Positions 21,797 through 48,172 of a DNA stretch of 64,000 bases are shown here, piece by piece. The stretch comes from Azolla caroliniana. Lineage: Eukaryota; Plantae; Polypodiophyta. How positions within the stretch are numbered: position 1 is the first letter of the stretch; the number at the start of each line of letters is the position of its first letter. A program made the position numbers and the translations under genes. Below the pieces are notes generated by a model that saw only the letters and a list, made by a program, of their open reading frames with translations, had not been told where the DNA came from and did no database searches. The stretch lies in contig JBHGNT010000018.1 of the NCBI GenBank assembly GCA_043228905.1, positions 9,672,001-9,736,000 of the forward strand, in the 5' to 3' direction.

Positions 21797-21869
21797 GCAC
21801 TTGTAGTTAAGTGGATAGAGCGTCTGTTTCCTCAGCGAAAGGTTGAAGGTTGGACCCCTTCCTAGTGCT
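21797..21869 (+). tRNA. tRNA-Arg(CCT)-derived copy, degenerate
   Basis: Same layout, loop TTCCTCA; B box mutated. Confidence 0.7.
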
Positions 21870-22804: not shown

Positions 22805-22877
22805 GCACTTGTAGCTCAGTCGATAGAGTGTCTATTTTCTAACCAGAAGGCTGAAGGTTCAACCCCTTCCTAGTGCG
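22805..22877 (+). tRNA. tRNA-Arg-derived copy with anticodon TCT, degenerate
   Basis: Loop TTTCTAA; stem mismatches. Confidence 0.7.
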
Positions 22878-23318
22878 ATTGAAGTAATGATCATTCATTT
22901 CCTTTGTATTCACAATGTTCTATTTGGTTTATGTGTCTCACTTCGAGGTTTACCCAATCTGATGTGCATAATACTAATAAGTTACTCCACATTCATGGTT
23001 TAGGATTGTAAATTCAAATTTGCACAATCTAGAGGTGGGTGTTAGACCCCACAAATGCAAAACTCTAGCAATCTATTATATTGTGAAATGCACATAAATG
23101 GAATCCAAACCAGCTTGCTTAGCTTCTTACTTCCTATTCAATTTATAGTTGTAACAAGGGTTGGCTTTACTCCTATTCAACCATTTGGGTTGGCTTTAGT
23201 TCGCTACATCCGTCCTAACAAGGGTATGCTAAAAGGGTGGCTCAACAGAACACATGTATACCATAGCATGAAGGCATGCATGCTAAACAAGGGTATGCTA
23301 AAAGGGGCACAAAGGAAC

Positions 23319-26300: not shown

Positions 26301-28637
26301 TACCGGAACCGGCCCCGATCCCGAAATGGATTCGGATGAAGAAGAAACGGAAGAACCGGTTACCGAAGCTCCGGAACGGAGATATCCTCTAAGAGAGAGA
26401 AGGGCCCCCCGGAGATTTCCGGAACCAGAGCACCTGTTGCTAACCGACGAGGGGGAGCCGGAGAGCTTTGAAGAAGCAAAACATGACACCCAGAGCCGCA
26501 GGTGGTTGAGTGCCATGCAGGACGAGATGGATTCCCTGCATGAGAACCACACATATGAACTTGTGGAGCTGCCGAAAGGAAAGCGGGCACTTCGAAACAA
26601 GTGGGTGTTCAAGCTGAAACCGGGAGATGCCGGAAACCCCCCGAGATACAAAGCCAGGATCGTGGTGAAGGGGTTCCAGCAGAAGAAGGGCGTCGACTTC
26701 GACGAGATATTTGCCCCGGTAGTGAAGATGACCTCCATCCGGACGGTGCTGAGCATAGCGGCAAGCATGGACCTCGAGGTAGAACAGATGGACGTGAAGA
26801 CGACATTCCTTCACGGTGACCTCGAAGAAGAGATCTATATGCAGCAACCGGAAGGATTCGAGAAGAAAGGGAAGGAGCACCTGGTATGCCGGTTGAAGAA
26901 GAGCCTTTACGGACTGAAGCAGGCTCCCCGGCAATGGTACCGGAAGTTCGACTCCTTCATGACCGACGAAGGGTACCTCAAAACGCAGTCCGACCACTGC
27001 GTGTTTGTGAAGAAGTTCGAAGGAGGAGACTTTCTAATACTCCTCCTGTACGTGGACGACATGTTGATCGTCGGACGGGACCAGGTCAAGATACGGATGC
27101 TGAAGAAGGCTCTTCACCGAACCTTCTCAATGAAGGACCTGGGTCCGGCGAGACAAATACTAGGGATGCACATCATCCGGGACCGGAGCAAGAAGCAGTT
27201 GTGGCTGTCACAGGAAAAGTAGACAAAGGTGCTTAAACGGTTCAACTTGTCGGAAGCAAAACCGGTCGGATCGACCCTCTCGGCAAACTGCAAGCTGTCC
27301 AACAAGCAAAGTCCCAAGACAAAGGCTGAAAAGGAGGATATGATGAAAGTGCCGTATGCCTCAGCCGTCGGGAGCTTGATGTACGCCATGGTGTGTACGA
27401 GACCGGACATAGGATATGCAGTCGGAGTGGTGAGCCGGTACATGAGCAATCCCGGCAAAGAGCATTGGAACGCGGCCAAGTGGATACTCCGATACCTGAA
27501 GGGCACGGCAAACGTGTGCCTCCGATTCGGCTCCGGTAAGCCCGAACTCGACGGCTTCACCGATTCGGATATGTCGGCTGATGCAGATACCAGCCGGTCC
27601 ACATCAGGGTATGTGATGACGTATGCAGGGGGAGCTATTTCATGGCAGTCGAGGCTGCAGAAGACGGTTGCGTTGTCAACCACGGAGGCGGAGTACATGG
27701 CGGCTGTTGAAGCCGGCAAGGAAATAATATGGATGAAGGACTTCATTAGAGAGCTCGGTATCCGACAGGAGGAGTACCGACTCTACTGCGACAGTCAGAG
27801 TGCAATCCACCTTGCGAAGAACGCGGCCTATCACTCCCGGACGAAGCACATCCAGCGAAGATATCACTGGATCCGGGAAAGGATAGAAGACAAGGAGTTC
27901 GTGCTGACGAAGGTCCACACGGACGAGAACGGGTCGGATATGCTGACCAAGGTGCTCACACCCGACAAGCTGGAAGCATGCCGGAAGAGGATCGGATTGG
28001 AGAGACATCCCATGCCGAAGTGAAGGGGGAGTTTGTTGGGATTACTGTCCCTTTCGGATGGGATGGTCGGATATCGGAGATGAATGCCGACAATCCCGGT
28101 TTCGGTTTCGGAACCGGATGATGAAGACCCCGGCTTCGGAGCCGGATGACGAATGTACCCGGAGCGAGATCCGGATGCGGGGACATATCTGTGAATATGT
28201 TTGCCAAGGGCCCTTGAGGCTATAGTTGTAAATAGCCCCAAAGTCATTTGTGTATAAATATGACTTAGGGTAAACAGTTTTATTGTGGCTTATCATTTTT
28301 CTGTTTTTCCACTCAAGAGGAGTGAAGAGAGAGCAGCCGCGAGAGAGATAGAGCGTGAGAGAGGAAGAGGTTGACGCCTCTGTGTATTTCCGCCGCCTGT
28401 GGCGAAGACAGCGAGCTCAAGGTCGTCACCTTGCAGCTCGCCATTGTATATTTCTCTGTGCATAGTTTTGGTTCGGAGTCTTGTACTCCCGTGGTTTTTC
28501 CCGTACAGGGTTTTCCACGTTAAATCGTGTGTCCACTCTATTTCTCGCATTTCCCATTTTCTGCAACAACGATTCGTGTGTTTCCTTGGTTGTGGCCGAG
28601 AGGTGAAGTTTGGAAAGTGTCGATTGATTTTCCATCA
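23319..28637 (+). mobile_element. Young full-length Ty1/Copia (family G) inserted in the LTR of D; LTRs 23319-23922 and 28034-28637
   Basis: Two 604-bp LTRs with about 5 differences by eye; GGAAC TSD; PBS TGGTATCAGAGC 23926-23937; PPT GAAGGGGGAG. Confidence 0.97.
23953..28023 (+). CDS. Copia Gag-Pol polyprotein with a single in-frame TAG at 27220-27222
   Basis: CFHCGKPGHFRKNC, VDSGAS, HTD..DNGGE..E integrase, YVDD, TDSD; ORFs 23812-27222 and 27229-28023 share a frame. Confidence 0.93.
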
Positions 28638-28719
28638 GGAACACATGCACACCCAACATGAAGGCATGCACTTGCATCCAAGGGACACCACATTTCCCCC
28701 TTGAGAGAAACAAGGAGTT

Positions 28720-29998
28720 TTACGACATGGGGAAAGGACGAGCACTAGAAGATGGGCTTGGGGTAGCATAGGGCTTGATGCAGGCAAAATGGTCGGAGGT
28801 GAATCGACCATTGGAATTATGTCGAAGCAAGTAAATCGTGGATTTGATTGCACGAACCATGGTGAATGGGTCGATCCATCGGTGCATGAGTGATTCATTG
28901 AGACCGTGCCGCCCAACCAGGAAGTAAACAAGAACTTTGGTTCCATCATCATAAGTCGGGGTAATTTGACCCACGTCGTAGTGTTGCTTGTTGTTGTGCG
29001 ACTTGTAGGTTTCAAGAGCGTTCTTGTCGAAGGAGAGGTAGCAGTTGTTGGAGATAGAGCCCCCAAGTGGCACCATCCATGTTGGTAGGTTTGGAATGGA
29101 CGTCAATGGACGATTCTGGTGGGAGCCAAGGGTCACGCCCATAGAGTGCTCAAAAAGGACTGATCCGTGTTGACGCCTAAACAGATGTATTGTAGGCGTG
29201 CGTGACGAAAGGCAAGATTTGATCCCAGGTTTTGTGGCATGGATCGAAGTAAGCGGCAATCTCCTGCTTGAGGGTCTTGCTGAGGCATTCGGTGAGGTCG
29301 TTTGTTTGCGGATGGTAAAGGGATGTAAACACCTGTTGGACACCTAGTTGAGTTGCAACCGCGTTGAGGACGTTCCCATGGAATTGGTGGCCCTGATCAG
29401 ATAAGAGTTGGACAGGGCAACCATGCTGAAAAATTACCTTGTGCAAAAGTTGGGATGCGATTGTTGGCACAGTGACATCAGGGATGGCAACAGTTTCAGC
29501 CCATCTAGTGAGGTATTCTGTTATGATCAGGATATACTTGTTGCCACTGGGGGTTTCAGGAAAAGGTTCCATGAAATCCCATCCGACGACCTCGAAAGGC
29601 GATGTGACGGTGATGGGTTGGAGCATTCCGGCAGGCTTGCTCGCGGGTTTGATGTGTTGACACAAAGCACATTGGTTGATGTAGGTAGAGACAGAGTGTC
29701 GTATGTTGGGCCAATAATACTTGAGACGTAATTATTCAACAACCTTGTGGAAACCCAGATGACCCGACAATGGGTGATCGTGATAAAATTGGAGATACGT
29801 CTATTGTAGGGCATCAGGGATGTAGAGATGTGGCTCATGATGCGCCTGAATGAAGAACACCAAGTTATCGCAGAGCACGAATCGTCGTTGTGAGGGAAAT
29901 GCTTGGAGGGGGCACAACTGATGCGTTATCTCTTGGATGGCGGGGTCGTGTTGTTGAAGTGTAGCAATTTGTGGTAGTGGTAATGGAAGGTCAGACGT
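28720..29998 (-). pseudogene. Integrase remnant of Gypsy D
   Basis: PFEVVGWDF, LLSDQG, YHPQTN motifs; broken frames. Confidence 0.88.
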
Positions 29999-30514
29999 TG
30001 TCGTGAAGATTTTCGGCAATAGTGTGAAAATCCCATAAAACGTACAAAATCGAGTATGAATCATGTAATACAATAATTGTGAAGATAACATTTTTAAAAT
30101 CTAAGTACAAAATGATGGAGGTTTCGAATGCACCTTATTACACGAGAAATGGACAACTAAATGTCAAGATATGAGGGTATAAAGCTTGTGAAAAGAAAAG
30201 AGAAAATTGTGAGATATCCCACATAGGCACGACAAATACGGCTCTCATCATATATAAGGTGGAGCAAAAGATATTATCTTTGTGTCTATGTGTGGAGCAT
30301 AGAGAGTTCAAGGTAACTTGAACTTAGAGTGGAGGTGGCTAGCTACTCGAAAAGGGTTTTCGCCAACCAAAACCGGACCGGCGATGGAGCCGGTGATCCG
30401 ACCGCAATCCGGATGCCGCATGCGGCACCGGTATCCGGCGTCGGCATCCGGCGATGGTATCCGGCGAACCGACGATTAGATAAAATAAATATATAAAAAT
30501 ATATACATATACAA

Positions 30515-30590
30515 GGAGGGCAAGTATGGATTCGAACCTTGCACCTCCAAGTTAGGAGTCAAATGGCTTACCATTAAGCCATAGTATTTA
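30515..30590 (-). promoter_or_regulatory. tRNA-like Pol III cassette in LTR A (second copy ~37771-37846)
   Basis: Minus strand: box A TGGCTTAATGG (30581-30571), box B GGTTCGAATCC (30538-30528), T5 at 30499-30495. Confidence 0.65.
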
Positions 30591-31043
30591 GTTGAAATTA
30601 TATTTCTATCATTGTACTTTTACATGTAAATTCTCATCCATGAGTGCTAAAATGAGTGACATGGTTAGCATGCACCACATGTAATACTTAAGCGCCAAAT
30701 GGCAAACATGCAATTTATGCATGTCTTGTACCCTCACATGCATCATATGCATGAGAGCATCTATAAAAGAGGGAAGGGGGAGGAGAAAAACACGGTTTTT
30801 TTTGTATGAAAATTAAGAGGAAGAAATTCGTTAACAAATCAATTGTGTATCTCAACTTCTCTCTTTCCCAATCTATCTTAAGTACTTTCTCGCCAAAGCT
30901 TGTATCGACTCTAAATCCTTCCGGTCCAGAACCCCGGCGGTTCCGCCTCACGATCCGCGCGTAGTGACGGATCTTCACGACATAATAAAGTGGTGAACCC
31001 GACGTGAAAGAGGCGGTAGGAAGGATCAAGTCGAGATTAATAC

Positions 31044-33248
31044 ATGGAGATGGCGTCCTCAAGCAACCAAGCAGGAGAGCTCGAAAGGATGATGCTAATC
31101 GTCGAGCAAATGATGAGATCTCGGGACAACGACGCGAGCGTGGAGAAGGCTATCGATCGTGTCGTAGAGCTCGAGGGCCAATTTGATGGAAGGAACGTTA
31201 CGAAGTTCCTTGATGCACATAAGAGGGAGATGAATCAAAGGGACGTGTCCGAGGCACGTCAAATCGCAAGCTTCAAGAGAGTTGTCGCCAACAACATCCA
31301 AAGACGCGTCATCGAGCTTCAAGAAGGAAAGACAACATGGTCCGAGTTCGAGAAAAGGATACTAGCGGAGTTCGTGACTGAAGACTCAACGAGGATGACT
31401 CGACATGCCCTGATGAAGTGGATAGAGAAGAAGAATAAGAAGATGAGCGTCTCGAGGGTGTACGACGAATTCGACCAGATGTTTAGTCGTCTCCCCATTA
31501 CGGACCAAGTGTTGCTTGAAGAGGACAAGACTTTGTACTTCTTGAAGGCCGTGGACATAAAGGATAGACGGGAGTTGGGGACTCTTCTCGAAGATGATAC
31601 CCAAGCAAATGGGCCCGTAGCGGACTGGATCGCGGTGAAGCGGGCATGCAATAGGCTCGACAAGCGTCGCCAATGGGTTGATGACACCAACTTGACGGGA
31701 CCGACTACCACGGAGAAAGCAAGACCGCCGAAAGTAGCTGAGCCGCTGAGACAAAGTAACGTGGAAGAAAAGAAGATTAATGACGACATCATTGAAGAGC
31801 TAGCGAAGAAGTTCGAGAAGGTCACTCTAGCCAACATGAATCGTCGGGGCCCTAAAGGAAAAGAACCCTTTAGATGCGTGTGGTGCGATAGCATGGACCA
31901 CATGAGAAGGGATTGTGCGAGCCTTCGAGAGGCAATTCGACAAAATATCGTATACATAGAGGACAACATGATCTGCTCAAGTGAGACTAGAAGACCCCTA
32001 CGGGTGAATTTCGGAAGAGGAGGAATGAAGAGATCTATCGAGGATGCCGATGCGACTCATGTGGATGCGATGCACTATGCTGCGTCGGCCGGAATAAGAG
32101 TCGGGAAAGACAAGACTGAAGCTGCTAGAGCGGGAGCAAAGTTTTGGACTTCCGTTCTCGAATATGAGAAGAAGGGAAAAGTCACATCGAACGAGGTAGA
32201 GCTTGCGGACAGAAACGTGCAAAGCATAACCGGGTGGTCGGATCCGGTGGACGACAACACCATACTCGCAGAGGTGATGTGCGACAACCACGAGGTGTTC
32301 GTCGAAGAAAAGAGAAAGAGAATAGAAGAGCAAGGCCCATCAAAAAGACATGAAACAAGGAACGCGAAAAAGAAGGACGATGCGGAGACGAGTCGACCTT
32401 TACAAACGGAGGAACGAGAATCAAGCCGAAAAGGGGAGCTGAGCATACGAGTTGAAGAAACGGTTCGGCCCGTGAAGGTTGGTGTCGAAGACCCCGCTCG
32501 GAGGACAACGACCATACCTACCTATAAGCTAAGGTCGGACATAGAGCAGACGACGGACCTAAAGAAGATTCTCGAAGAACGAGTTCCTGATAGCCACGTA
32601 ACTTTGTCCTTGAGGGAATTGCTTGGCATTACGAAGAAGGAGTTCCATGACACGATTGTGGACCTTGTAAAGAGAAAGAGACAACAATCGGACGAGGAAG
32701 AAGAGAAGCCGCAGAAAGCAAAAACGAATGCCATAACGATGGCAAGAGACGAAATCGATGAAGATATGGTGGATAGCCACTACACTCGACCTCATTGGGC
32801 ACGAGCAACAACGGAGACGCCGGTAAAGATCGGGGAGAAGAAAGAGACCGTCGTAGCCTTGATCGACCACGGCTCGGAGATCAACCTCATGTCAACCGAC
32901 TTCTACAAAAAGGGAAGATGGCCAATCAATACAAACCACGGATGGAAGATTCGCGCGGCAACAAAGTCTACGGAGGACTTGTACGGAGCTTGTCCCAATG
33001 TCAAAGTCACGATCAGGGACGTGGAGATGGATCAACACTTCTTCGTACAAGAATCGGCGTCGCATCCTGTCATCCTAGGGCAACCTTATATCACATCATC
33101 TCGGATGGAGACCAAAGTGTTCGATAATGGAGCAGCCTTCGCACGAATAAAGGGTCTTGAAAACCAAAGATCGGTCCAATTCCTAACAGTGCGAGCCAAT
33201 CATGAAAGGAATCGAGATAGTCTCGGAGGCGAATCCTCGGATTTTTAG
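31044..33248 (+). CDS. Gag-protease polyprotein of element A (734 aa, intact)
   Basis: CVWCDSMDHMRRDC knuckle; ALIDHGSEINLM aspartic-protease-like motif; VILGQP. Confidence 0.92.
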   Translation: MEMASSSNQAGELERMMLIVEQMMRSRDNDASVEKAIDRVVELEGQFDGRNVTKFLDAHKREMNQRDVSEARQIASFKRVVANNIQRRVIELQEGKTTWSEFEKRILAEFVTEDSTRMTRHALMKWIEKKNKKMSVSRVYDEFDQMFSRLPITDQVLLEEDKTLYFLKAVDIKDRRELGTLLEDDTQANGPVADWIAVKRACNRLDKRRQWVDDTNLTGPTTTEKARPPKVAEPLRQSNVEEKKINDDIIEELAKKFEKVTLANMNRRGPKGKEPFRCVWCDSMDHMRRDCASLREAIRQNIVYIEDNMICSSETRRPLRVNFGRGGMKRSIEDADATHVDAMHYAASAGIRVGKDKTEAARAGAKFWTSVLEYEKKGKVTSNEVELADRNVQSITGWSDPVDDNTILAEVMCDNHEVFVEEKRKRIEEQGPSKRHETRNAKKKDDAETSRPLQTEERESSRKGELSIRVEETVRPVKVGVEDPARRTTTIPTYKLRSDIEQTTDLKKILEERVPDSHVTLSLRELLGITKKEFHDTIVDLVKRKRQQSDEEEEKPQKAKTNAITMARDEIDEDMVDSHYTRPHWARATTETPVKIGEKKETVVALIDHGSEINLMSTDFYKKGRWPINTNHGWKIRAATKSTEDLYGACPNVKVTIRDVEMDQHFFVQESASHPVILGQPYITSSRMETKVFDNGAAFARIKGLENQRSVQFLTVRANHERNRDSLGGESSDF

Positions 33249-33301
33249 AGCGGACTATTGAAGCATGGGGCACAAATAGTCCGAGCAATCACAAGACCCC
33301 A
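33239..33301 (+). promoter_or_regulatory. Putative -1 programmed ribosomal frameshift signal
   Basis: G GAT TTT heptamer directly before TAG; 5-nt spacer; CGGACTATT/AATAGTCCG stem; loop TGGGG complementary to downstream CCCCA; -1 frame open. Confidence 0.72.
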
Positions 33302-36300
33302 CAAGAAAGAAGAGCGCGTGGATTGCAAGGAGAAGCAATATGTGTCACACCTAGTGGCGCATGTAAACTAGTACTACCCGACAAGAAGCACAAGCACCAG
33401 ATACAAGAATTCGAGAAGATGTTGAAAGAAGAGAACATAATAGAAGAAGGGGAGTTCGTGACTCATATTATGGAAGAAGCCTCATTTAACGACACCATCG
33501 GCGAAATCGAGGACGTTGTGGACTTGAGCTATCTTCACAACCAATGCGTGATTTCGGTTAACTCTGTCAACATGTACGCTATCATCGATGAATACCGTCG
33601 TGGCATCTCGGTGAAGGAAGCTGACATCAACACGAAATATAAAACGGTGGATAAGAAGATCAAGCCAGTTGCGGTTCCGCTACCGGAAGATAGCTGGCAA
33701 AAGATGAAGGAAGTCGCTAACGATCCAAGCTTAAGAGATCCGAAGAAGATAGGTCATGACTTCACCAAAGAGACGAAGGGGAAGCTACGAGTTGGAAAGG
33801 AGGATTTCACCCGACAAGAAGCACAAGCACCGGATACAAGAATTCGAGAAGATGTTGAAAGAAGAGAACATAATAGAAGAAGGGGAGTTCGTGACTCATA
33901 TTATGGAAGAAGCCTCATTTAACGACACCATCGGCGAAATCGAGGACGTTGTGGACTTGAGCTATCTTCACAACCAATGCGTGATTTCGGTTAACTCTGT
34001 CAACATGTACGCTATCATCGATGAATACCGTCGTGGCATCTCGGTGAAGGAAGCTGACATCAACACGAAATATAAAACGGTGGATAAGAAGATCAAGCCA
34101 GTTGCGGTTCCGCTACCGGAAGATAGCTGGCAAAAGATGAAGGAAGTCGCTAACGATCCAAGCTTAAGAGATCCGAAGAAGATAGGTCATGACTTCACCA
34201 AAGAGACGAAGGGGAAGCTACGAGTTGGAAAGGAGGATTTCCTTCTCCCTGAAGAGGAGCGAATGTTTCGCGATATGCTTGAGAGACATGGGAAGGCTTC
34301 CGCATTCTTCCCACGAGAAATCGGATGCGCCGACCCAAAGGTTATAGAGCCAATGGTGATCTTCATGGTGCCTCATGTGCCTTGGAATTTGAAACCAATA
34401 CCGGTTCCGAGAGCACACCTTCCGAAGCTGATCGAGCTCTTAAAGGAGAAGATGAGTATGGGAATTCTAGAACCGTCGAATGCTCCTTATTCCAATAGGT
34501 GGTTCACGGTGCCGAAGAAGAATGGATCATTGCGATTCATCCAAGATCTTCAACCCGTCAACAAGGTGACAATTCGAAATGCCGGAATCGGTCCGAGCAT
34601 GGACGAATTTGCCGAAGCATTTGCGGGCCGGTCCATCTACTCCATTGGCGATCTCTACTCCGGATATGACCAATTCCAATTGGCGATCGACAGTCGGGAC
34701 ATTACAACCATGAGGACTCCGATCGGGCTTGTGCAGATGTGTACCTTACCCCAAGGCGCAACGAACTCGGTGGCTCATATGGTGAATGCCATGAATAAAG
34801 TCTTGAAGGATTGCATTCCGGACATCACGATGCCATTCTTGGATGATATTCCGATAAAAGGATGTTCGGATGAGGAGAAAGATGAATCAAAAGATAAGGA
34901 AGGTTGTAGAAAGTTCGTTGCGGATCATATGAAAGATTGCGAGAAGGTGCTTCAAAGGCTCGAAGACGCGAATTTGACATTTTCGGGAGAAAAATCCGCA
35001 TTCAGGCAACCGGAGATCTTGGTGGTAGGTCACTTGTGTGGAGCATACGGCCGGAAGCCCTCGCCATCCAAAGTGAACGCAATCCAAGACATGAAAGAAG
35101 AATGCGAAAACCAAACGGAGGTTCGAAGGTTCCTTGGAGCGTGCGCGTTTTATCATATATGGATTCCTCACTACGCTCATGTCGCCGAACCGTTATATGA
35201 ACTACTAAAGAAAAGAATAAAGTTCGAATGGCGAGACGAGCACACAGAGGCGATGCGAAGATTAAAGAAACTGCTTCTTGAAGCTCCGGCACTAAGGAAG
35301 GCCGACTATGCCGAAGGGAAGCCAATTTACGTGACCGTAGATATGAGCCCAACCGGAATCGGGTGGGTCATCAATCAAGAAGGTGAAGATAATGTGCAAT
35401 ATGCCGTCCGGTTCGGAGCAAAGGTTCTCAGCGAACTGCAACAAAGATATGCCCAAGTCAAGCGGGAACTTTGGGGTATTGTGTCGGCAGTGAAGACGGA
35501 CAAAGATTACCTGATCGGGTCAGAAGTGATAATAGAGACAGATTGTCTCCCAATTCTCGGAATGGTCTCGGGATGTGCGACCCCAGATCTTGCTATGTTA
35601 AGGTGGATCGCCTACATCAAGTCTTTAAACCCAGAAATCCGTCACATCGCAGGGAAGAAGAACGCCATGGCTGACATGCTATCGAGGGCAAGATTTTCAA
35701 ACGGAAGTAACATGGTTTCGGAAGATGAAGATGTCGCCCTCGACTTCTTCAAGATGGCTCGATTGTCGGCGGAAGACCAGGACACGCAAACCCTCCACGC
35801 CTTCAACGAGAACGAGTACGAAGGAGAATGGTTACTCATCGGTAGATTCCTAAGAACATTGACGACAGATGCTTCGTTGACAAAGGAGGAGGCCCTACGA
35901 ATCCGAAAGAAAGCTTACCAATACTTCTTGAAGGGAGGATTCCTTTGGCGACATCCAAAAAGAAGGACAGGAATACCACGTCGAGTGGTGGTAAAGAAAG
36001 AAGAGCAAGAGACGCTGATGACCGAATTCCACGAGAGTGCTTGGGCAGGTCATAGAGGAACATGGGCGACGTTCGAAAAGTTGAAGGAGAAGTACTGGTG
36101 GCCAAGCATGTACAAAGATGTACTCCATTTCGTGTCCACATGCGAAACTTGCCAAGTATATTCAAATATACGTCATCGTGATGAGTTAAAGCCGACATAC
36201 CCACTCACCATTCACTTCAAATGGATGGTGGATCTGGTCTCGATGCCAATGGGAGTGGGACAAATGAAGTACTTAGCGCTCGCAAGGGAAGACTTGACAA

Positions 36301-37166
36301 ATCAAGTGGAAGGACGAGCCTTGACAAATAAGACGACTTCAGCCGTTTGTAAATTTTTACTTGAAGATGTTGTTTGCCGATATGGATGTGTAGGGAAGAT
36401 AGTGGCCGACCGAGGGGAGTTGGACGCGCATGAAGCGACGGAGCTCTTCAAAAGACTAGGCGTGAAGCTCTCCCTCACAACTGCCTACAATCCGGAAGCA
36501 AATGGGAAGATCGAGCGAGGGCATGGACCTATCGTTAAAGCCATCGTACGGGCATGCAACGGTCGAGTCGGGAATTGGCCACGACTATTACCCTATGCCT
36601 TGTGGGCCAATAGAACGACACATAGCTCGGTGACAGGGTATATGCCGACGGAGCTTATGTATGGACAAAAGCCGATTATGCCCATCGAAAGGACGATCGC
36701 CTCATGGGTAGCGATACCGTGGGAGAACGAGATGAGCCGAGAAGAGTTATTAGCGGCGCGGATAAGGCAACTTGAAAGAAGACCTGAAGATTTAGAAAAA
36801 GCGCGAAAGATGATGAAGGCAGCCCGAATAAAGAACAAAGTTCGGTTCGAGAACACGCATCGACTTCGTCCCAAGAAGATTGAAGAAGGGGATTGGGTTT
36901 TGGTCTACGACAGCACCCTTGACAATCAACATAGTACAACAAGGAAGTTCGCAAGAAGATGGTTCGGGCCGTATGTGGTGACAAGTGCCAACGATAATGC
37001 CACATACCACCTTGCGGAACTAGACGGATCAAGGTTGGCCGTACCCATTGCGGGAAAAAGAGTAAAGCTTTTCAAGAAAAGACAAGACAAGGATCCTGAC
37101 CTCGATTACCTCGACGATGAACATAATAGGCCGGATGAAAATGAAGACATGGAGGAATCTAATTGA
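33242..37166 (+). CDS. Pol (RT-RNase H-integrase) of element A, frame broken by a 433-bp duplication; main ORF 33756-37166
   Basis: DLYSGY, LPQGATNS, FLDD; RNase H VDMSPTGIG..ETDC..ADMLSR; HESAWAGH..CETC, WMVD, ADRGE, NGKIER; GPY. Confidence 0.92.
33376..34241 (+). repeat. 433-bp direct tandem duplication in pol
   Basis: 33376-33808 equals 33809-34241 with one visible mismatch. Confidence 0.95.
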
Positions 37167-38704
37167 TCATCGTAGCCGAAATCTCACTTCTTCTCTTCTT
37201 GGCACGTACCGGAGGACGTGCGGTTTGGTGGCGGTGGATGTCGTGAAGATTTTCGGCAATAGTGTGAAAATCCCATAAAACGTACAAAATCGAGTATGAA
37301 TCATGTAATACAATAATTGTGAAGATAACATTTTTAAAATCTAAGTACAAAATGATGGAGGTTTCGAATGCACCTTATTACACGAGAAATGGACAACTAA
37401 ATGTCAAGATATGAGGGTATAAAGTTTCTGAAAAGAAAAGAGAAAATTGTGAGATATCCCACATAGGCACGACAAATACGGCTCTCATCATATATAAGGT
37501 GGAGCAAAAGATACTATTTTTGTGTCTATGTGTGGAGCATAGAGAGTTCAAGGTAACTTGAACTTAGATTGGAGGTGGCTAGCTACTCGAAAAGGGTTTT
37601 GGCCAACCAAAACCAGACCGGCGATGGAGCCGGTGATCCGACGGCATCTGACCGCAATTCGGATGTGGCATCCGGCGGCGGCATCCGGCGGAGGCACCGG
37701 TATCCGGCGACGGTATCCGGCGAACCGACGACTAGATAAAATAAATATATAAAAATATATACATATACAAGGAGGGCAAGTATGGATTCGAACCTTGCAC
37801 CTCCAAGTTAGGAGTCAAATGGCTTACCATTAAGCCATAGTATTTAGTTGAAATTATATTTCTATCATTGTACTTTTACATGTAAATTCTCATCCATGAG
37901 TGCTAAAATGAGTGACATGGTTAGCATGCACCACATGTAATACTTAAGCGCCAAATGGCAAACATGCAATTTATGCATGTCTTGTACCCTCACATGCATC
38001 ATATGCATGAGAGCATTTATAAAAGAGGGAAGGGGGAGGAGAAAAACACGGTTTTTTTTGTATGAAAATTAAGAGGAAGAAATTCGTTATCAAATCAATT
38101 GTGTATCTCAACTTCTCTCTTTCCCAATCTATCTTAAGTACTTTCTCGCCAAAGCTTGTATCGACTCTAAATCCTTCCGGTCCAGAACCCCGGTGGTTCC
38201 GCCTCACGATCCGCGCGTAGTGACGGATCTTCACGACATAATAAAGTTACCAAATGATGTCGCGAAGATTCGCGCGTGCGTGTGCTACTCGAGCGACCAC
38301 CGGGGTCTTGGACTGGGGAGGATGTTCACGGAATTATCGAAGAGATGACGATCAATGTAAGATTAGACGAAATTTGTTCACTTGAGAAGAAGAAAGATTG
38401 TACACTTGAGAAGTAGAAAAATATGAAGAAGATAAAGACAAATATAATTATATTGATGATAATGGTGTTGGTGATATCACATATTGAGCCCCCCATACAC
38501 AAGCCCAACTAGAGGCTTTTATAGGTCTTTCCATGCTTGTGACATGCACAAAACCATGGGCTAAAACCATGGTTTTGTGCACACGGTTTTGCTTATGTCA
38601 TGCACAAACCATGGGTTTAAAACCATGGTCTTGTGCACATGGTTTTCTATGGTTGTTTCGTCTATAATTTGTATATGAAAAGGAAATACATAAAATCTAC
38701 ACTA

Positions 38705-38780
38705 TATGATAGTTGTCCTAGTGGTAAGGCAATTATCTTGTATCTTAGAGGTGCAAGGTTCAAACCTTGCTTGCACCCCT
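38705..38780 (+). promoter_or_regulatory. tRNA-like Pol III cassette in LTR B (second copy ~41587-41662)
   Basis: Box A-like TGTCCTAGTGG (38714-38724); box B inside hairpin GCAAGG-TTCAAA-CCTTGC. Confidence 0.55.
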
Positions 38781-38980
38781 TTGTATGAACTCAAGTGCCA
38801 CTAGGCCTTAGGAGGCTTATTTGCTAAGTGTATGTGCAATGTATCACATCCTTGGTTTATTCGTCTCACTCGGTTTCACACCGTAGCCGAAAATCGTCAC
38901 GACATCCACCCCCACCAAACCCGCACATCCTCCGGTATGTGCCGAGAAAGGTGAAGAGGTGAGATCTTTGGCAACGGTGA

Positions 38981-41095
38981 TCAACCGAGTTCCTCTGCAC
39001 GCTCGTCGACCTCGTCTGACTTCGTCTTCCACTTCAAGTATGCGCAATCTTTCCAACCGAACCACCGTAGCCACCCGATCCACCATATCCGGCGCTCACA
39101 CCTTCTTCCCCGATCGGTTGTAGTAGATCTACTAAACGATGTCGTCGATACGACCGCTCTTCCTTCGTCCATCGCGTTTTTCCTTCGATTGGGTTCCTGG
39201 CCACTCCTCGCGCTCACCGTCTTCAACCGGGTGTTGTGGATCGTTCGTGTCCATCTTCGATTATGCCAGGTTTGCCCTTCTCCGGATCGGTCTCCGCTGA
39301 TCACTTCTTGGCTCGGTTGGCCTTCGTCTACATTCGCATTTCCCCGAGTCGGCCTCGACCGATTGATTCTGGCTGGGTCGACCCCCTTTTGGATTGGAAT
39401 CGTTTGATCGATTTTCGCCGAATTAGGTTTCGGCCGGGTCGGCCCCGGTCGATCGGCTCCCATGTGGATCTTCCTTCGTTCGGGCCGGAATCTCGGCCGG
39501 ATCGTCTTCCGGTCCGACCGGTTCTTGACTCTTCCTTCCTTCCCGCATGCAACCTCTCCATCGAACTCAACCGCAGCTTCATCCTTGGCCTGCTCGTCGG
39601 CCATATCCTTCCCTCCGTGTATGCTCGCCGCGAGCCATATTGTCTCCTCTTCGCCACGTCCTTTATCTTCGGTCTTATGTCGACACACGGTCTCGACTGT
39701 TGAAGTCTCCGGAACCGGTGTGAAGGAATCCCTTCGTTCATTTACCTTGTCTTCCTCATCACCCTTCCGGTCGTCCGCTTTTCCGTCGACACATTCCGTC
39801 TCTCCGGTCTCACGTTGGCGCACGTGCGCAACCGCCGAAGTCTCTAGAATAGGTGTGGGTATATCCTTTCTTCCTCGATCTTCTTCCTCCTTGTGTTGGG
39901 CCTTCATCTTCCCATCACCACCTTCCGTCTCTCCGGTCTCACATTGGCACATGAGTGCAACCGCCGAAGTCTCTGGAACAATCGTGGAGAAAGTCTTAAC
40001 ATGGCTATCCGTTGTCGACTCGTCCATAGCCACCTCCGACTCAATGTCGTTTGTCATGGCTACCTCCTCAATCTCTTCAGACTCAAACACTTTTTCTCCC
40101 TCAATCATGCAACCTTTTCTCATGCTTGCGCCGTCATCACCCGATGTTTCGTACACAATGCGTGTTCCGAAACATTTATCCTCCCTCGAAGTGGCGTTCG
40201 CCGTCCTTGAGTCATCAGCCTCCTCCTTGGCCGTCGTTTCTTCGTAAGACAAGAAGATGACTTGTTTCGCACCTTCTCTCTCGGTACCGTCATACCGAAC
40301 CTGAGCCTTTGTATCAGCCACTTCATTAACCCGCATTTGTTGGGAGGTCTCTTCTTCCTCGATCACCATTCGCCTCGGTTTTGTCTCCCTTTTAAGCTTC
40401 ATTTCTTTTGTTGGTGGCGCGTTGTTGCATCTCGTCCCTCTTCGATCGTCCCTCATGGGTCGTCTTGTTGTCGTCGATATTCTCGCTTGCCCCTTATCGT
40501 GTAGTCGGCATACACTTTCCACTTTGCTCCAATCCTCAATGAGGCCATTTGCACCATCATCTTCTTCGAGTTTGAGGCCGATCGCCATCCTTTCCATTCG
40601 ATCGATTGACTTCACGAACATAAGGACCTTATCGACCCCCACCAATCTTTGTTCCCGCTCCGACAATTGAGAAAAATGATGCTCGAAGTCTACGAATGCT
40701 TGTGTCGCACCTTGGTGGGTCTTCGCTGATGTCACCCATTGGTCGAAGTTGCGTCGATCTCGTCCCTTCAGTCTCTCATAGCCATATTCCTCCAATAGAG
40801 CCTTCTCGAAAGTCGCCCACGAATCATGAGCTTCTAGAAGCTCTTTTACATCTTTGAAGATCGGTTGAGACACCACCCGACAAAAGTACTCTAGCCTCAT
40901 AGCTTTGTCCACACCTCTTGAATCCATCTCCGCATTGTAGACTTTTAGGAAACTTTGGACTTCGGCACCGTTGAAATAGCTCATTCGTTCGACTACCTTG
41001 TCGACGGCTTGTTGGGCTTCATTTCTTCTTTTCCCTTCTCTCAGAAACTCCATCATCCTTTTTGACATTGCCTCCATGAGATATTCGCCATCCAT
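38981..41095 (-). CDS. Gag-like protein with long acidic/repetitive tail (704 aa, intact)
   Basis: First ~205 aa align with Gag A (AVDKVV..FNG..FL; DKVLMFVKSID..LEEDDGANGLIEDW); no zinc knuckle or enzyme motifs. Confidence 0.85.
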   Translation of the reverse strand: MDGEYLMEAMSKRMMEFLREGKRRNEAQQAVDKVVERMSYFNGAEVQSFLKVYNAEMDSRGVDKAMRLEYFCRVVSQPIFKDVKELLEAHDSWATFEKALLEEYGYERLKGRDRRNFDQWVTSAKTHQGATQAFVDFEHHFSQLSEREQRLVGVDKVLMFVKSIDRMERMAIGLKLEEDDGANGLIEDWSKVESVCRLHDKGQARISTTTRRPMRDDRRGTRCNNAPPTKEMKLKRETKPRRMVIEEEETSQQMRVNEVADTKAQVRYDGTEREGAKQVIFLSYEETTAKEEADDSRTANATSREDKCFGTRIVYETSGDDGASMRKGCMIEGEKVFESEEIEEVAMTNDIESEVAMDESTTDSHVKTFSTIVPETSAVALMCQCETGETEGGDGKMKAQHKEEEDRGRKDIPTPILETSAVAHVRQRETGETECVDGKADDRKGDEEDKVNERRDSFTPVPETSTVETVCRHKTEDKGRGEEETIWLAASIHGGKDMADEQAKDEAAVEFDGEVACGKEGRVKNRSDRKTIRPRFRPERRKIHMGADRPGPTRPKPNSAKIDQTIPIQKGVDPARINRSRPTRGNANVDEGQPSQEVISGDRSGEGQTWHNRRWTRTIHNTRLKTVSARSGQEPNRRKNAMDEGRAVVSTTSFSRSTTTDRGRRCERRIWWIGWLRWFGWKDCAYLKWKTKSDEVDERAEELG

Positions 41096-41786
41096 CTTCG
41101 TCCTCCCCTGCTGCTCTTAACGTCGGGTTCACCAAATGATGTCGCGAAGATTCGCGCGTGCGTGTGCTACTCGAGCGACCACCGGGGTCTTGGACTGGGG
41201 AGGATGTTCACGGAATTATCGAAGAGATGACGATCAATGTAAGATTAGACGAAATTTGTTCACTTGAGAAGAAGAAAGATTGTACACTTGAGAAGTAGAA
41301 AAATATGAAGAAGATAAAGACAAATATAATTATATTGATGATAATGGTGTTGGTGATATCACATATTGAGCCCCCCATACACAAGCCCAACTAGAGGCTT
41401 TTATAGGTCTTTCCATGCTTGTGGCATGCACAAAACCATGGGCTAAAACCATGGTTTTGTGCACACGGTTTTGCTTATGTCATGCACAAACCATGGGTTT
41501 AAAACCATGGTCTTGTGCACATGGTTTTCTATGGTTGTTTCGTCTATAATTTGTATATGAAAAGGAAATACATAAAATCTACACTATATGATAGTTGTCC
41601 TAGTGGTAAGGCAATTATCTTGTATCTTAGAGGTGCAAGGTTCAAACCTTGCTTGCACCCCTTTGTATGAACTCAAGTGCCACTAGGCCTTAGGAGGCTT
41701 ATTTGCTAAGTGTATGTGCAATGTTGCACATCCTTGGTTTATTCGTCTCACTCGGTTTCACACCGTAGCCGAAAATCGTCACGACA

Positions 41787-44397
41787 ACGTCACGGGTAGA
41801 AATTGGACAGCTTGGAAATCGGCACAAGAGAGACTATCGGCGACCAAATTGGTTACACCTTTTTGATAGGAGAGGGTAAACTGATAATCTTGAAGTGCCA
41901 ACGTCCATCGCAACAAGTGGCCCGGAGGATGAGGTAGATGAATAAGAGAAAGTAAGGGTCGGTGGTCATTCTCAACCGTAACATGCCCGCCATGAAGGTA
42001 TGGGTGAAGACGCTGGAAAGACCAAACGATCCCAAGTAGTTCCTTCTCAGTGGTTGGTTCCATTCAGCCTGCGTGAGAGTTCAGCTAATGAAGGCGACCG
42101 CCTTCTCTTGCCCATGGCAATCAGTTTGCAGGAGGACGGCTCCTAACCCATGGTTAGAGGCATCTGTCTACGACGTAAACGGGTGGTCAAAGTTAGGATG
42201 GGCGAGCAAACCCTGATTCCTAGACCGTTTTTTTGAGGCGACGAAAGTTGTCTTCGCAAGCAGGATCCCAAACGAATGACACACCTTTCTTCAGGAGATG
42301 ACAGAGGGGGGAAAGGGACCAAGGCGAGGTTCCCAAGTGGCAGTGTGGATAAGGATGTCGTCGAGATAAACGAGGAGGACGGCAAAGATGGAGTTTGCCA
42401 TGCATTGGAATGTGCTGCCGGCATCAGACAAGCCAAACGGCATGTGGGTGAACTGGAACAGCCCACGTCTTGTGCAAAATGCGGTCTTGTAGGCATCAGA
42501 CGGCTTTAAGGGGATCTGCCAATATCCTGAGGCTAAGTCAAGGGAGGTGAAATAACAGGAGCCCCTGAGCTGGTCCAAGAAGTCGTCCACGCGAGGGAGC
42601 GGGTAGAGGTCATGGATCGTCACTTTGTTGAGAGGCCTAAAGTTGATGTAGAAGTGGAAGGTGCCATCATCCTTCTTGACGAGGTAGGGTTCAAAAACCC
42701 AATCACCGGTGGAAGGAATGATAATACCTTTGGTGAGCATATCGGTGACAGCAGCATCGATGCGATCGTGGTCGAGGGGGGAACGTCGACGTGTAGCCAT
42801 GCGAATGGGAGCGGCATCCCTAGTACGAATGACATGTTGTACCGGGAAAGAGACAGTACTGGCATGCGTGGGTTGGGGGGCTAGTGACGGAAAACGAGCT
42901 AACAATTGGAGTACGGAGATTAACCCTCCTTGGGACTGAGGCCCACCTAGACTTGGCTAACGTGGGGGACATGGGGGCTACCGTGTAGGAGGGGGATAGG
43001 GGGAGCTTGTGGGACAATTTGTTTGTGAGCATCGAAATCAATCATAGTATGACACTTGAGGAGCCAATTGCAACCTAAGGTGAGGGGGAAGAGTTGGTGG
43101 GGCAAGACATAAAAGTGGTGTGAGAATGTGAGAGTGCCTAAGGTAACAGTGCAGTGGGCTTGCGTGCGAGAGTGGTATAGATGTTGGTGATCGCCAAAAA
43201 GGACTTGGATGGAAGGAACGGTGGTTGTGGGGAGGTCTAATTGGTGAACTAAGGCAGTGCTAATTGTAGAGATACTACTACCAGAGTCTAATAGGATGGT
43301 GTGTGTGGAGTGATTAATGGTGGCGAGAGCAGTGCCTACCTGTGAACTAGAAGAGGCGGATGCTTGGACATCGGGGGCTGGCTCTTCCATCAGGACCCCA
43401 GGAGTTAGTTTCCCGGAAGGTCAACCAACGATGTTGCGTCAGCCATGGTTATCTGGCCTTGCTGCTTGTGAGATTGTTGCTGCAATTTCCGGCAATAATG
43501 TCGGACATGTCCATAATTGTGTCCTTGGGCATCGTGATTAGGAAGGTTTCGGCGAGTCTACATCTGCACGTTTTGGATGTCAATGTCCATGGGGGTCGCT
43601 CCTTGGTACTACGCACGCAAGTCCGTCGATGGTGGAGGGGGCTCTCGTGGTTGGGAGTCAGATAGCATACAAGCTTCGATGCGTTGGGCAATTAGGATCG
43701 CATCGTTGAAGATCTTGGGACCTTGGTCCCGGGCCCGGTGAGTGATGTCAGGGCGCAGACGGGGCCATAAGAAGAAAACCTTGACATGCTCGGGCATGGT
43801 TGGATCGGCACGAATGAGGAGTTGATTTAGGTGAACACCAAATTGGCCTACTGGTTCGTGTGCTTGTTGTTGCAACGTCTCGAGTTGTTGCACTGCCATT
43901 TGGGACGAATTTTGATGGGCGAAGTTTTGCACGAGGAGATCCCGGAGGATCACCCAGTTCTCCGTCACTTCGTTGGCTTGTTGCACGTACCAAGTGGCGG
44001 CACCATTTTCGAGCAAGGTGTGAACTTCCAAAGCCTTGCGCTCATCAGACCATTTGTGGTAACCTGAGATCATCTCAAAGTGATCCAACCATGCTAAGAC
44101 GTCCTCAGATGGCAAGCCGGAGAAGGACTTTGGGCGAACCTTGGAAATTGGCCGATCTGGAGACCGATCGTTGGTAGTGGAGAGGAAGGAGAGCATAGCT
44201 TGGTTCGTGTGGCTGATTTGAAGCATGGAGTTGGAGAGGAGCTGGAGGAGTTGCTCCATTTGTAAAGGGGGTGGTCGTTCGTGAGGTTGCGAGAACGCAG
44301 GCTCCATCAAGGTATCGACGTTTGTGGCGACGGGAGGGAATTGGGATGCCATGAATGAGGTGGTAATGGCTAAAATTTTACCCTGCTTCTCCACCAA
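41787..44397 (-). pseudogene. gag-PR-RT-RNase H remnants of Gypsy D
   Basis: Broken ORFs with PKSFSGLPSEDV, LLDSGSS, LDLASGYWQ, MPFGL, YLDD, ENDHRPL. Confidence 0.88.
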
Positions 44398-44508
44398 TTA
44401 TATGAAATCCACATAAAAGGAAACCAAACCAACTTGCCTAGCTTCTTACTTATCATTCAATTTGTCGTTCAACCAAACCAACCCTGGTTTGAGCTTTGTG
44501 GCTTGGTT

Positions 44509-44608
44509 NNNNNNNNNNNNNNNNNNNNNNNNNNNNNNNNNNNNNNNNNNNNNNNNNNNNNNNNNNNNNNNNNNNNNNNNNNNNNNNNNNNNNNNNNNNN
44601 NNNNNNNN
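44509..44608. other. Assembly gap (100 N)
   Basis: Run of N. Confidence 1.
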
Positions 44609-44609: not shown

Positions 44610-47222
44610 CTTTTTGATAGGAGAGGGTAAACTGATAATCTTGAAGTGCCAACGTCCATCGCAACAAGTGGCCCGGAGGATGAGGTAGATGAATAAGAGA
44701 AAGTAAGGGTCGGTGGTCATTCTCAACCGTAACATGCCCGCCATGAAGGTATGGGTGAAGACGCTGGAAAGACCAAACGATCCCAAGTAGTTCCTTCTCA
44801 GTGGTTGGTTCCATTCAGCCTGCGTGAGAGTTCAGCTAATGAAGGCGACCGCCTTCTCTTGCCCATGGCAATCAGTTTGCAGGAGGACGGCTCCTAACCC
44901 ATGGTTAGAGGCATCTGTCTACGACGTAAACGGGTGGTCAAAGTTAGGATGGGCGAGCAAACCCTGATTCCTAGACCGTTTTTTTTGAGGCGACGAAAGT
45001 TGTCTTCGCAAGCAGGATCCCAAACGAATGACACACCTTTCTTCAGGAGATGACAGAGGGGGGAAAGGGACCAAGGCGAGGTTCCCAAGTGGCAGTGTGG
45101 ATAAGGATGTCGTCGAGATAAACGAGGAGGACGGCAAAGATGGAGTTTGCCATGCATTGGAATGTGCTGCCGGCATCAGACAAGCCAAACGGCATGTGGG
45201 TGAACTGGAACAGCCCACGTCTTGTGCAAAATGCGGTCTTGTAGGCATCAGACGGCTTTAAGGGGATCTGCCAATATCCTGAGGCTAAGTCAAGGGAGGT
45301 GAAATAACAGGAGCCCCTGAGCTGGTCCAAGAAGTCGTCCACGCGAGGGAGCGGGTAGAGGTCATGGATCGTCACTTTGTTGAGAGGCCTAAAGTTGATG
45401 TAGAAGTGGAAGGTGCCATCATCCTTCTTGACGAGGTAGGGTTCAAAAACCCAATCACCGGTGGAAGGAATGATAATACCTTTGGTGAGCATATCGGTGA
45501 CAGCAGCATCGATGCGATCGTGGTCGAGGGGGGGAACGTCGACGTGTAGCCATGCGAATGGGAGCGGCATCCCTAGTACGAATGACATGTTGTACCGGGA
45601 AAGAGACAGTACTGGCATGCGTGGGTTGGGGGGCTAGTGTCGGAAAACGAGCTAACAATTGGAGTCGGAGATCTGTACTGATGTTACACCTAATTGACAG
45701 TGAATGACTAAGTTGGGGACATGGGGGTACTGAGTAAGTGGTGGGGGATAGGGGGAGTTGTGGTGATGAATTTGTTTGAGCATCGAATCAATCATAGTAT
45801 AACTTGAGAGCAGTTGCTTGACCTAAGGTGAGGGGGAAGAGTTTGTGGGGCATAAAGTTGTGATGAAGTGGTTGAGATGTGAGAGTGCTAAGGTACGTGC
45901 GTGGGCTTGAGTGAGAGTGTATAGATGTATAGGTTGTGATGCAAGACTGGTGGAAGTTGTGGGGAGGTCTATTGAGTGGGTGATTGAAGAAGTGACTAAT
46001 TGAGATGTTAGCTGTAGGTCTAATGATGGTGTGTGTGGAGTATTGAGTGAAGTAAGGTTTGTTTGTAGTGATGATCTAGAAGAGGCGGATGCTTGACATC
46101 GGGAGTATGCTTACCTGCTGAGTGTCAACAACTGTGGATTATTTCGAGTCACAGGAATTGGTTGCTTGTAAGCTGAGCTTGCTTGTAGATTGTTGCATTT
46201 CCGGATCAAGAATGTCGGACATGTCCATATTGTGTTCCTTGGGCATCGTGATTAGGAAGGTTTCGGCGAGTCTACATCTGCACGTTTTGGATGTCAATGT
46301 CCATGGGGGTCGCTCCTTGGTACTACGCACGCAAGTCCGTCGATGGTGGAGGGGGCTCTCGTGTTGGGAGTCAGATAGCATACAAGCTTCGATGCGTTGG
46401 GCAATTAGGATCGCATCGTTGAAGATCTTGGGACCTTGGTCCCGGGCCCGGTGAGTGATGTCAGGGCGCAGACGGGGCCATAAGAAGAAAACCTTGACAT
46501 GCTCGGGCATGGTTGGATCGGCACGAATGAGGAGTTGATTTAGGTGAACACCAAATTGGCCTACTGGTTCGTGTGCTTGTTGTTGCAACGTCTCGAGTTG
46601 TTGCACTGCCATTTGGGACGAATTTTGATGGGCGAAGTTTTGCACGAGGAGATCCCGGAGGATCACCCAGTTCTCCGTCACTTCGTTGGCTTGTTGCACG
46701 TACCAAGTGGCGGCACCATTTTCGAGCAAGGTGTGAACTTCCAAAGCCTTGCGCTCATCAGACCATTTGTGGTAACCTGAGATCATCTCAAAGTGATCCA
46801 ACCATGCTAAGACGTCCTCAGATGGCAAGCCGGAGAAGGACTTTGGGCGAACCTTGGAAATTGGCCGATCTGGAGACCGATCGTTGGTAGTGGAGAGGAA
46901 GGAGAGCATAGCTTGGTTCGTGTGGCTGATTTGAAGCATGGAGTTGGAGAGGAGCTGGAGGAGTTGCTCCATTTGTAAAGGGGGTGGTCGTTCGTGAGGT
47001 TGCGAGAACGCAGGCTCCATCAAGGTATCGACGTTTGTGGCGACGGGAGGGAATTGGGATGCCATGAATGAGGTGGTAATGGCTAAAATTTTACCCTGCT
47101 TCTCCACCAATTATATGAAATCCACATAAAAGGAAACCAAACCAACTTGCCTAGCTTCTTACTTATCATTCAATTTGTCGTTCAAACCAAACCAACCCTG
47201 GTTTGAGCTTTGTGGCTTGGTT
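44610..47222 (-). repeat. Second copy of 41859-44508, probably an assembly overlap artefact
   Basis: Near-identical apart from homopolymer indels and a garbled block at ~45660-46240. Confidence 0.85.
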
Positions 47223-47403
47223 GCGCGAACGATATGACTCGATTCAAGGGGAATTAGATGAAGCAGAAAGGGTGGCTCAACGGAACACATGTACACCATA
47301 GCATGAAGGCATGCATGCTAAACAAGGGTATGTTAAAAGGGGCACAAAGGAACACATGCACACCCAACATGAAGGCATGCACTTGCATCCAAGGGACACC
47401 ACA

Positions 47404-48172
47404 ATATGTTAAGGATTTACCATGCAAGCAAAGACTTATACTATGATGGGTCCCAAGCGAACAAAAGGAATGAGCTATTTTGCAATTAGAGACTTGTATA
47501 GATGTTCAATATTTCCTAAAAAATCAATTGCGGTCAATAATTTGTGAGCTATAATTAGGCATTTCACATACATTGAGTATATATTCGCAAATTCAAAGAC
47601 ATTGATTAGTAATTAGAAAAATTATAAGAATAGCCGACTCTTTCTTTTAGATCCAATAGTTGGCACTTGTAATTTAGTGGATAGAGCGTTTGTTTCTAAA
47701 GCAAAAGGCAGAAGGTTCGACCCCTTCCTAGTGCGATTGAAACAATGACCATTCATTTCCTTTGTATTCATAATGTTGGATTTAGTTTTTGTGTCGAGGA
47801 TCGATGTTTACCCAATCTCATTTGCATAACACTATTAGGATACTCCACATTCTTGGTCTAGGATAGTGAATACAAATTTGCATAAACTAGAGGTGGCTTT
47901 AAGACCCAACAAATGCAAAACTCTAACGATGTATTATACATTAAGGGTTTACCATGGAAGCAAAAACCCATAGTGTGTTGGATCCTGAGTGACCAAAATG
48001 AATGAGGTATTTTGCATTTAGAGACTAGTATAGATGTTCAGTATTTCCTAAAAAATCAATTACGGTGACTAATTTCTGAGCTATAATTAGTCATTTCACA
48101 TAGATTGATTATATATTCGCCAATTCAGAGGCATTGATTATTAATTAAAAAAATTAATAGAATAGTCGACTC
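47404..48172 (+). repeat. Continuation of the tRNA-Arg satellite
   Basis: Resumes in register with 23081. Confidence 0.93.
47663..47735 (+). tRNA. tRNA-Arg-derived copy, anticodon loop reads CTA
   Basis: TTTGT-TTCTAAA-GCAAA; intact T arm; mutated D stem. Confidence 0.7.

Follow-up and report, generated by a model that had tools for sequence, protein, structure and literature searches.

A tail-to-tail pair of LTR retrotransposons inside one target-site duplication in Azolla caroliniana is consistent with the integration of two reverse-transcribed DNAs as one unit

Insertions in which more than one long terminal repeat (LTR) retrotransposon copy occupies a single target site are known from several systems, and here we compare them with a locus of Azolla caroliniana (Polypodiophyta), in which an autonomous-type Ty3/gypsy element, A, and a gag-only element, B, lie tail to tail within one target-site duplication (TSD). 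The locus is part of a 64,000-nucleotide (nt) stretch, called the window throughout (assembly GCA_043228905.1, contig JBHGNT010000018.1, positions 9,672,001 to 9,736,000 of the forward strand). Complex insertions with three LTRs in head-to-tail order and a single TSD have been explained by template switching or by recombination that precedes integration (Sabot & Schulman 2007, PMC1950507; Zeng & Sun 2018 preprint, 10.1101/452573). The A/B pair resembles them in that several elements share one TSD and the unit appears to have been built before or during integration. The known complexes, however, are direct tandems of one family with a common middle LTR, formed by template switching or homologous recombination, whereas the present pair is inverted, combines two families and four LTRs, has no common LTR, and is held together by a non-homologous joint that keeps both cDNA termini.

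Other comparisons concern single features of the pair. Inverted tandems of LTR elements arise in Drosophila by double insertion (McGurk & Barbash 2018, PMC5932611). These are likewise inverted, touching pairs, but they result from two events and carry the palindromic target motif in the joint, where the present joint carries spacer and primer binding site (PBS) bases and no copy of the target. Proviruses of human immunodeficiency virus and murine leukaemia virus vectors can combine a normal U3 joint with a U5 joint that keeps the untrimmed terminal dinucleotide and 2, 4, 11 or 15 nt of the PBS (Sakurai et al. 2009, PMC2797772). An untrimmed U5 with a short piece of PBS next to a normal U3 joint is also what we see at the A/B pair; in the vector proviruses, host repair joined this U5 to host DNA or to the U3 of the same molecule, whereas here it is joined to the untrimmed U5 of a second, different element, the outer joints being normal on both sides and the TSD exact. 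Circles with two LTRs whose junctions contain PBS bases are known as well. Finally, two-donor (bimolecular) concerted integration, in which the ends of two DNA molecules are inserted with the correct stagger, is routine in vitro with retroviral integrases. That assay is a test-tube reaction with short donors, whereas the present locus would be a genomic product formed from the U3 ends of two natural elements, and to our knowledge no natural genomic product of two-donor integration has been documented. Searches of a literature collection with incomplete coverage found no description of an inverted dimer of two families linked through their untrimmed U5 ends, which is weak evidence of novelty. 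The locus looks like a rare natural record of an integrase inserting two separate DNA copies as one unit: we put the probability that a single integration event inserted two different reverse-transcribed DNAs as one inverted unit at roughly 70%.

One target site for two elements

The pair interrupts the pol of an older element, H:

28700-29994, - strand: host element H, integrase side of the interrupted pol; old degenerate gypsy
29995-29998: left TSD copy, ACGT; fits the N-CG-N target of the family
41787-41790: right TSD copy, ACGT
41788-42912, - strand: host element H, reverse transcriptase (RT)/RNase H side of the interrupted pol; old degenerate gypsy

Neither A, which has ACGT on its left and TAATAAAGT followed by B on its right, nor B has a TSD of its own; the TSD encloses the pair. 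The pol of H (- strand) is stop-ridden, with RNase H homology to the right of the insert and integrase homology to the left. Its right piece ends in FLPVT, a Ser codon is split, and the left piece starts with DLPLP, the two reading frames agreeing only when the insert and 4 base pairs (bp) are removed. We translated and aligned the two pieces separately, never joined, against homologues found with the stop-free right piece. The end of the right piece and the start of the left piece fall on residues 118 and 120 of the intact homologue P0155, 198 and 200 of P0165, and 139 and 141 of P0168. In 3/3 homologues the single residue between the pieces is the split codon, and therefore the host lost or gained nothing except the 4 duplicated bases. 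More than one element thus lies inside one TSD at an otherwise intact host site, which is the pattern by which a complex LTR-element insertion built ahead of integration is recognised.

Element A spans 29999-38238 on the + strand, and its parts are as follows:

29999-30982, + strand: 5' LTR of A, 984 nt, TG..CA
30983-30990, + strand: LTR-to-PBS spacer of A, 8 nt, TAATAAAG
30991-31004, + strand: PBS of A, TGGTGAACCCGACG
31044-33248, + strand: gag-region open reading frame (ORF) of A, 734 amino acids
33376-34241, + strand: tandem duplication at the start of A's pol, 433 nt in 2 copies (33376-33808, 33809-34241) with 1 difference
33756-37166, + strand: pol ORF of A, 1136 amino acids, RT - RNase H - integrase
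37222-37238, + strand: polypurine tract (PPT) of A, in inverted repeat I1
37239-38238, + strand: 3' LTR of A, 1000 nt, TG..CA

The TG..CA LTR pair, the PBS, the PPT and the RT - RNase H - integrase order are those of a Ty3/gypsy element. Both LTRs begin with TGTCGTGAAG and finish with CTTCACGACA, which makes a perfect 10-nt terminal inverted repeat. Pfam recognises RVT_1 (residues 252-426), RT_RNaseH (492-621), Integrase_H2C2 (746-802) and rve (822-913) in pol and has no match for the gag-region ORF. We take the PBS, TGGTGAACCCGACG, to be complementary to the 3' end of plant tRNA-Trp. The nearest named pol relatives, at ~55-62% identity, come from the liverwort Riccia sorocarpa, and copies in metagenome assemblies reach 77-92%. 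Spacer and PBS are conserved among the relatives that we retrieved by protein (L001-L009; internal regions ending inside or at the LTRs, thus without 3' ends), the spacer position reading TAATTAAG or TAATCAAG in other family members. The 433-nt duplication is private to the present copy, as it is single in a 90%-identical relative (L002); 433 is not divisible by 3, so that a gag-pol read-through in A would be frameshifted.

Element B spans 38258-41786 on the - strand, tail to tail with A:

38258-38904, - strand: 3' LTR of B, 647 nt
38905-38921, - strand: PPT of B, in inverted repeat I1
38981-41095, - strand: only ORF of B, 704 amino acids, gag-like
41121-41134, - strand: PBS of B, identical to that of A
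41135-41139, - strand: LTR-to-PBS spacer of B, 5 nt, TCATT on the - strand; the same spacer is present in a relative of B (L001)
41140-41786, - strand: 5' LTR of B, 647 nt

The ORF fills the 2235-nt interior of B, matches the N-terminal third of A's gag at 30-34% identity, and has no Pfam match. Neither Pfam nor homology comparison gave an RT or integrase match in B, which therefore has no pol. Exact-protein look-ups returned no record of B's gag, nor of a 51-amino-acid ORF that crosses the joint between the elements. TR-GAG is the class name for one group of non-autonomous LTR retrotransposons. B resembles this class in its LTRs, PBS, PPT, lone gag-like ORF, lack of pol and membership of an abundant family; the likeness concerns B alone and has no bearing on the paired insertion. 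The PPT of B together with the first 30 bases of its LTR is 90% like that of A over 48 nt (repeat I1). Because of this likeness of the PPT and U3 terminus and the tRNA-Trp PBS common to both elements, the sequences support the view that B would use A-type enzymes. The present copy of A was probably itself mobilised in trans.

Several further repeats lie within the two elements. The LTR of B contains two tandem units of 56-57 nt rich in CCATGG palindromes (38534-38646, 41416-41528), with one unit fewer in L001, and its ORF contains three degenerate repeats of ~130 nt (39645-39987). The LTRs of A and B also have a 51-nt segment in common (30531-30581, 37787-37837, 38714-38764, 41596-41646), which is inverted between the two elements and 76% identical. 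ARAGORN found no tRNA in 29900-41900, this segment included.

The joint and the ordinary ends of the family

The two elements meet in a short sequence that contains no copy of the target motif ACGT:

38239-38257: A/B joint, 19 nt, TAATAAAGTTACCAAATGA

In retroelement replication, the synthesis of minus-strand DNA begins at the base adjoining the PBS, and linear DNA keeps the bases between CA and PBS at its U5 end until integrase cuts them off. The direct repeat of A overruns the terminal CA to 30991/38247, which adds TAATAAAG and T, the first PBS base. The repeat of B starts at 38249/41131 and adds ACCA and AATGA, the reverse complement of the 5-nt spacer and the first 4 PBS bases; the T at 38248 belongs to neither element. 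Hence, 9 + 9 bases past both CA ends match each element's own 5' LTR-to-PBS stretch, with a chance of ~4^-18. What is retained beyond CA amounts to 8 nt (A) and 5 nt (B), and the retained PBS to 1 nt (A) and 4 nt (B). The + strand reads ACCA-AATGA-TGTCGCG, in which the tRNA primer's 3' end precedes the first bases of B's minus-strand DNA, and on the opposite strand A keeps one such primer-derived base. These are the footprints expected from incomplete primer removal and from ends never trimmed by integrase. The initial sequence-only reading of the window had described the junction as A's spacer joined to the reverse complement of B's spacer plus TGGT, and the repeats that overrun both CA ends bear this out. 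The coordinates it gave for A and B all hold as well; its shared ACGT..ACGT TSD without a TSD of either element is confirmed from the flanks, and its restored host pol frame by the exact abutment of the two host pieces on P0155, P0165 and P0168.

How family A normally ends was read from public metagenome contigs scanned with the last 20 bases of A's LTR, which yielded 26 contigs (L010-L035). In 5/26 the LTR continues into TAAT(T/C)AAG and then the PBS, as 5' LTRs do, and the other 21/26 pass from CA straight into unrelated sequence, at 18 distinct places. The 3' end of a related element in L013 also stops at CA, giving 19 ordinary family-A 3' ends in all. An apparent tip of a B LTR 61 nt behind the A end in L019 was rejected as a chance 9-mer. 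None of these ends (0/19) carries the spacer behind CA, which answers the concern raised with the initial reading that the junction bases could be ordinary LTR sequence in other family members. Ordinary family-A ends are trimmed at CA, and therefore 38239-38247 is neither normal LTR nor normal flank.

The same ends reveal where the family inserts. The first 4 flanking bases are N-CG-N in 13/19 and N-TG-N or N-CA-N in 6/19, a preference with P ~1e-13 against the 4.9% CpG frequency in the window; TG and CA are the forms that CpG takes after deamination. A relative within the window, G2 (- strand; LTR ends at 4186 and 14835), has a clean CCGG/CCGG TSD at 4182-4185 and 14836-14839. Judged by these sites, this tRNA-Trp-primed gypsy family appears to integrate at CpG with a 4-bp TSD. 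Plant gypsy elements typically make 5-bp TSDs, and a 4-bp, CpG-centred target is unusual. Because the 19 flanks and the TSD of G2 centre on CpG, ACGT is the footprint expected of an A-type integrase. The spacer between CA and PBS measures 2 nt in G2 (13731-13732), 4 nt in a second relative within the window, G3 (55124-55127), 5 nt in B, 5 nt in L003 (2045-2049) and 8 nt in A, and the spacers of the tRNA-Trp-primed lineage are A/T-rich. The tails to be cut off by integrase are unusually long in families A and B.

Mechanism and competing explanations

How could the pair have been inserted? Directly observed are the anatomy, the intact single target site, the normal end processing of the family and its target preference. 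From these, we propose that an integrase of the tRNA-Trp-primed gypsy lineage, which would make 4-bp staggered cuts centred on CpG, took hold of two nearly identical U3 ends, one of an A cDNA and one of a B cDNA, and that both U3 ends were joined to the two strands of the ACGT site inside the older gypsy pol. The U3 ends look alike and would need no trimming of a long tail. Because the tips of A form a 10-nt inverted repeat and the U3/PPT of B is 90% like that of A, integrase meets almost the same sequence at all four ends. Both U5 ends would have stayed untrimmed, each with its spacer and with 1 (A) or 4 (B) bases copied from the primer tRNA's 3' end, and would have been joined to each other without homology, most likely by host end-joining repair. 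This may have happened before integration, through a linear dimer with U3 at each tip, or just after. What we infer is the enzyme behind the U5-U5 joint and whether this joint preceded integration. Thus, the proposal of the sequence-only reading that integrase paired the U3 ends and that the unprocessed U5 ends were end-joined stands as far as the single 4-bp TSD and the untrimmed U5 bases carry it, while the order of joining cannot be read from the sequence. What holds is that A and B cDNAs coexisted and that a single integrase complex accepted the two.

The same integration event may also have received a U5-U5 joint made by reverse transcriptase, in one particle with A and B RNAs: the plus strand at the end of the A template would add a base and jump to the end of the B cDNA, and the locus would then record co-packaging. 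A joint without homology and with 1 extra base fits non-templated addition followed by an end-to-end jump, and the PBS, PPT and LTR tips common to A and B make co-packaging plausible. Template switching between co-packaged RNAs is, moreover, an accepted source of head-to-tail complex elements (PMC1950507). However, no sequence feature separates such a jump from host end-joining of two finished cDNAs, and B, with a gag only 30-34% identical to that of A, may build or enter its own particles; we regard a template jump as unlikely. The locus had initially been read as a physical record that B is co-packaged with A, which goes too far: A and B RNA in one particle are needed only for a template jump by reverse transcriptase, so that co-packaging is not established, and nuclear end-joining of cDNAs from separate particles gives the same product.

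Could A and B instead have arrived separately, in an adjacent target copy, as neighbours or as tandems, with a later deletion or rearrangement making the joint? Double insertion into one target motif makes inverted LTR-element tandems in Drosophila (PMC5932611), and the LTRs of A look somewhat older than those of B. Yet a double insertion should have left ACGT in the joint, which consists of spacer and PBS bases instead, and an integrated A should end at CA, as in 19/19 ordinary ends. To place spacer and PBS bases behind both 3' LTRs, a rearrangement would have to start from two three-LTR tandems in inverted order and delete up to points within the PBS of each. Against either route, not one residue of the host pol is missing or extra at the site. 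We rejected both double insertion and nested insertion because of what the joint contains, and we consider separate arrivals with subsequent rearrangement very unlikely.

The inner joint may also be an artefact of assembly or library preparation, such as a chimeric long read or ligated free linear cDNAs, in which case the true locus would differ between the outer junctions. The joint contains short homopolymers, and the T at 38248 could be a base-calling error; no contig among those listed below supports the joint, and an N gap and a duplicated 2.6-kilobase (kb) stretch lie nearby. Against this, the outer junctions are at the same 4-bp host site, so that something must connect the U3 ends of A and B, and bases that agree exactly with the cDNA termini of both elements are not something an assembler makes up. 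Private features of A, namely the 433-nt duplication and the LTR differences, argue for reads from this locus and not for a collapsed family consensus. The assembly is unbroken here over at least 44.5 kb, a span that takes in the structure, other nested elements and an 8-kb satellite array. An artefactual joint is in our view very unlikely.

The relative ages of the two elements bear on whether they arrived together. Between the LTRs of A there are 21 substitutions and 2 indels over 984 nt, of which 11 substitutions and both indels fall in 78 nt (30399-30476), a minisatellite-like tract of short CCGGCG-type units arranged in a different order in each LTR. Judged by this pattern, the differences in the tract appear to reflect slippage or exchange, not point mutation. 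Outside it, the LTRs of A show 10 differences in ~884 nt (1.1%), and those of B show 3 in 647 nt (0.46%), two of them adjacent. With the cluster left out or counted as one event, the divergence of the two LTR pairs compares at P=0.08-0.26. The 433-nt duplication of A, with 1 difference (0.23%), brings the test to P=0.57 when it is included, and the pooled value for the duplication, B's LTRs and the part of A's LTRs beyond the cluster is ~0.7% (arithmetic from the counts of the age test). The gap in LTR age is therefore a trend, not a contradiction, and the ages are not clearly different. The refuting condition set by the sequence-only reading, clearly different LTR ages, does not apply: the difference between A and B reaches significance only when each change in the cluster is counted singly.

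Several observations nevertheless weigh against a single integration event. Counting every difference singly, the LTRs of A are more diverged than those of B (P=0.006). The ordinary 3' ends used for comparison are all from family A, with none from family B, and the pair is known from one locus only. A 100-N gap (44509-44608) lies 2.7 kb to the right of the pair, and ~2.6 kb are duplicated across it, so that the local assembly is not flawless. As to independent reads, we compared 37100-41900 with the Logan contigs of the four best public runs, which are 100-180 nt long and derive from very high-copy families, and among the contigs listed no independent one bridges the joint. Sequence of A's LTR is present in these contigs at extremely high abundance, that of B's LTR and interior at a lower one; a listed loose end at 38247 in run X3 continues into the PBS, as expected of 5' LTR copies with the TAATAAAG spacer.

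Genomic surroundings and meaning for the family

The pair belongs to a larger nested block. To the left of the N gap, ~2.6 kb (41859-44508) are repeated at 44610-47222 with 94.7% and 98.9% identity, a repeat that starts 72 bp from the end of B; it could be due to overlapping haplotype or paralogue contigs, or to a real tandem duplication. On both sides of the nested block lies a satellite-like array of ~530-nt units, 80-94% alike (15030-23080, 47404-48172), into which host element H was probably inserted. A copia element with LTRs 99.2% alike (23319-23922, 28034-28637) has both of its flanks side by side at 47267-47403, like an empty site; it probably sits in one LTR of H, the other LTR of H being unoccupied. 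The right LTR of G2 contains an insert of ~310 nt (13975-14290) with long terminal inverted repeats that is absent from the left LTR (4560-4580). It lies beside a poly-C tract and looks like a miniature inverted-repeat transposable element.

What would the pair tell us about the families involved? The locus displays the start of minus-strand DNA, the remnant of the primer (1 and 4 bases) and the length that integrase normally trims (8 and 5). It indicates that an autonomous gypsy family and a gag-only family produced DNA simultaneously in a single cell, and that both were acceptable to one integrase complex. Tentatively, and with more doubt than confidence, we suggest that the pairing of two U3 ends from separate cDNAs might be a regular side reaction in this lineage, caused by the 5-8-nt U5 tail. 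If so, the genome would hold a class of inverted homo- and heterodimers with tRNA-primer footprints at their inner joints, and the statistics of partners (A/B versus A/A and B/B) would reveal which elements meet in one particle or pre-integration complex. Should such pairs be common, one could study from sequence alone which elements travel together, and the pairs would supply long inverted repeats, a kind of sequence that makes genomes unstable and induces silencing.

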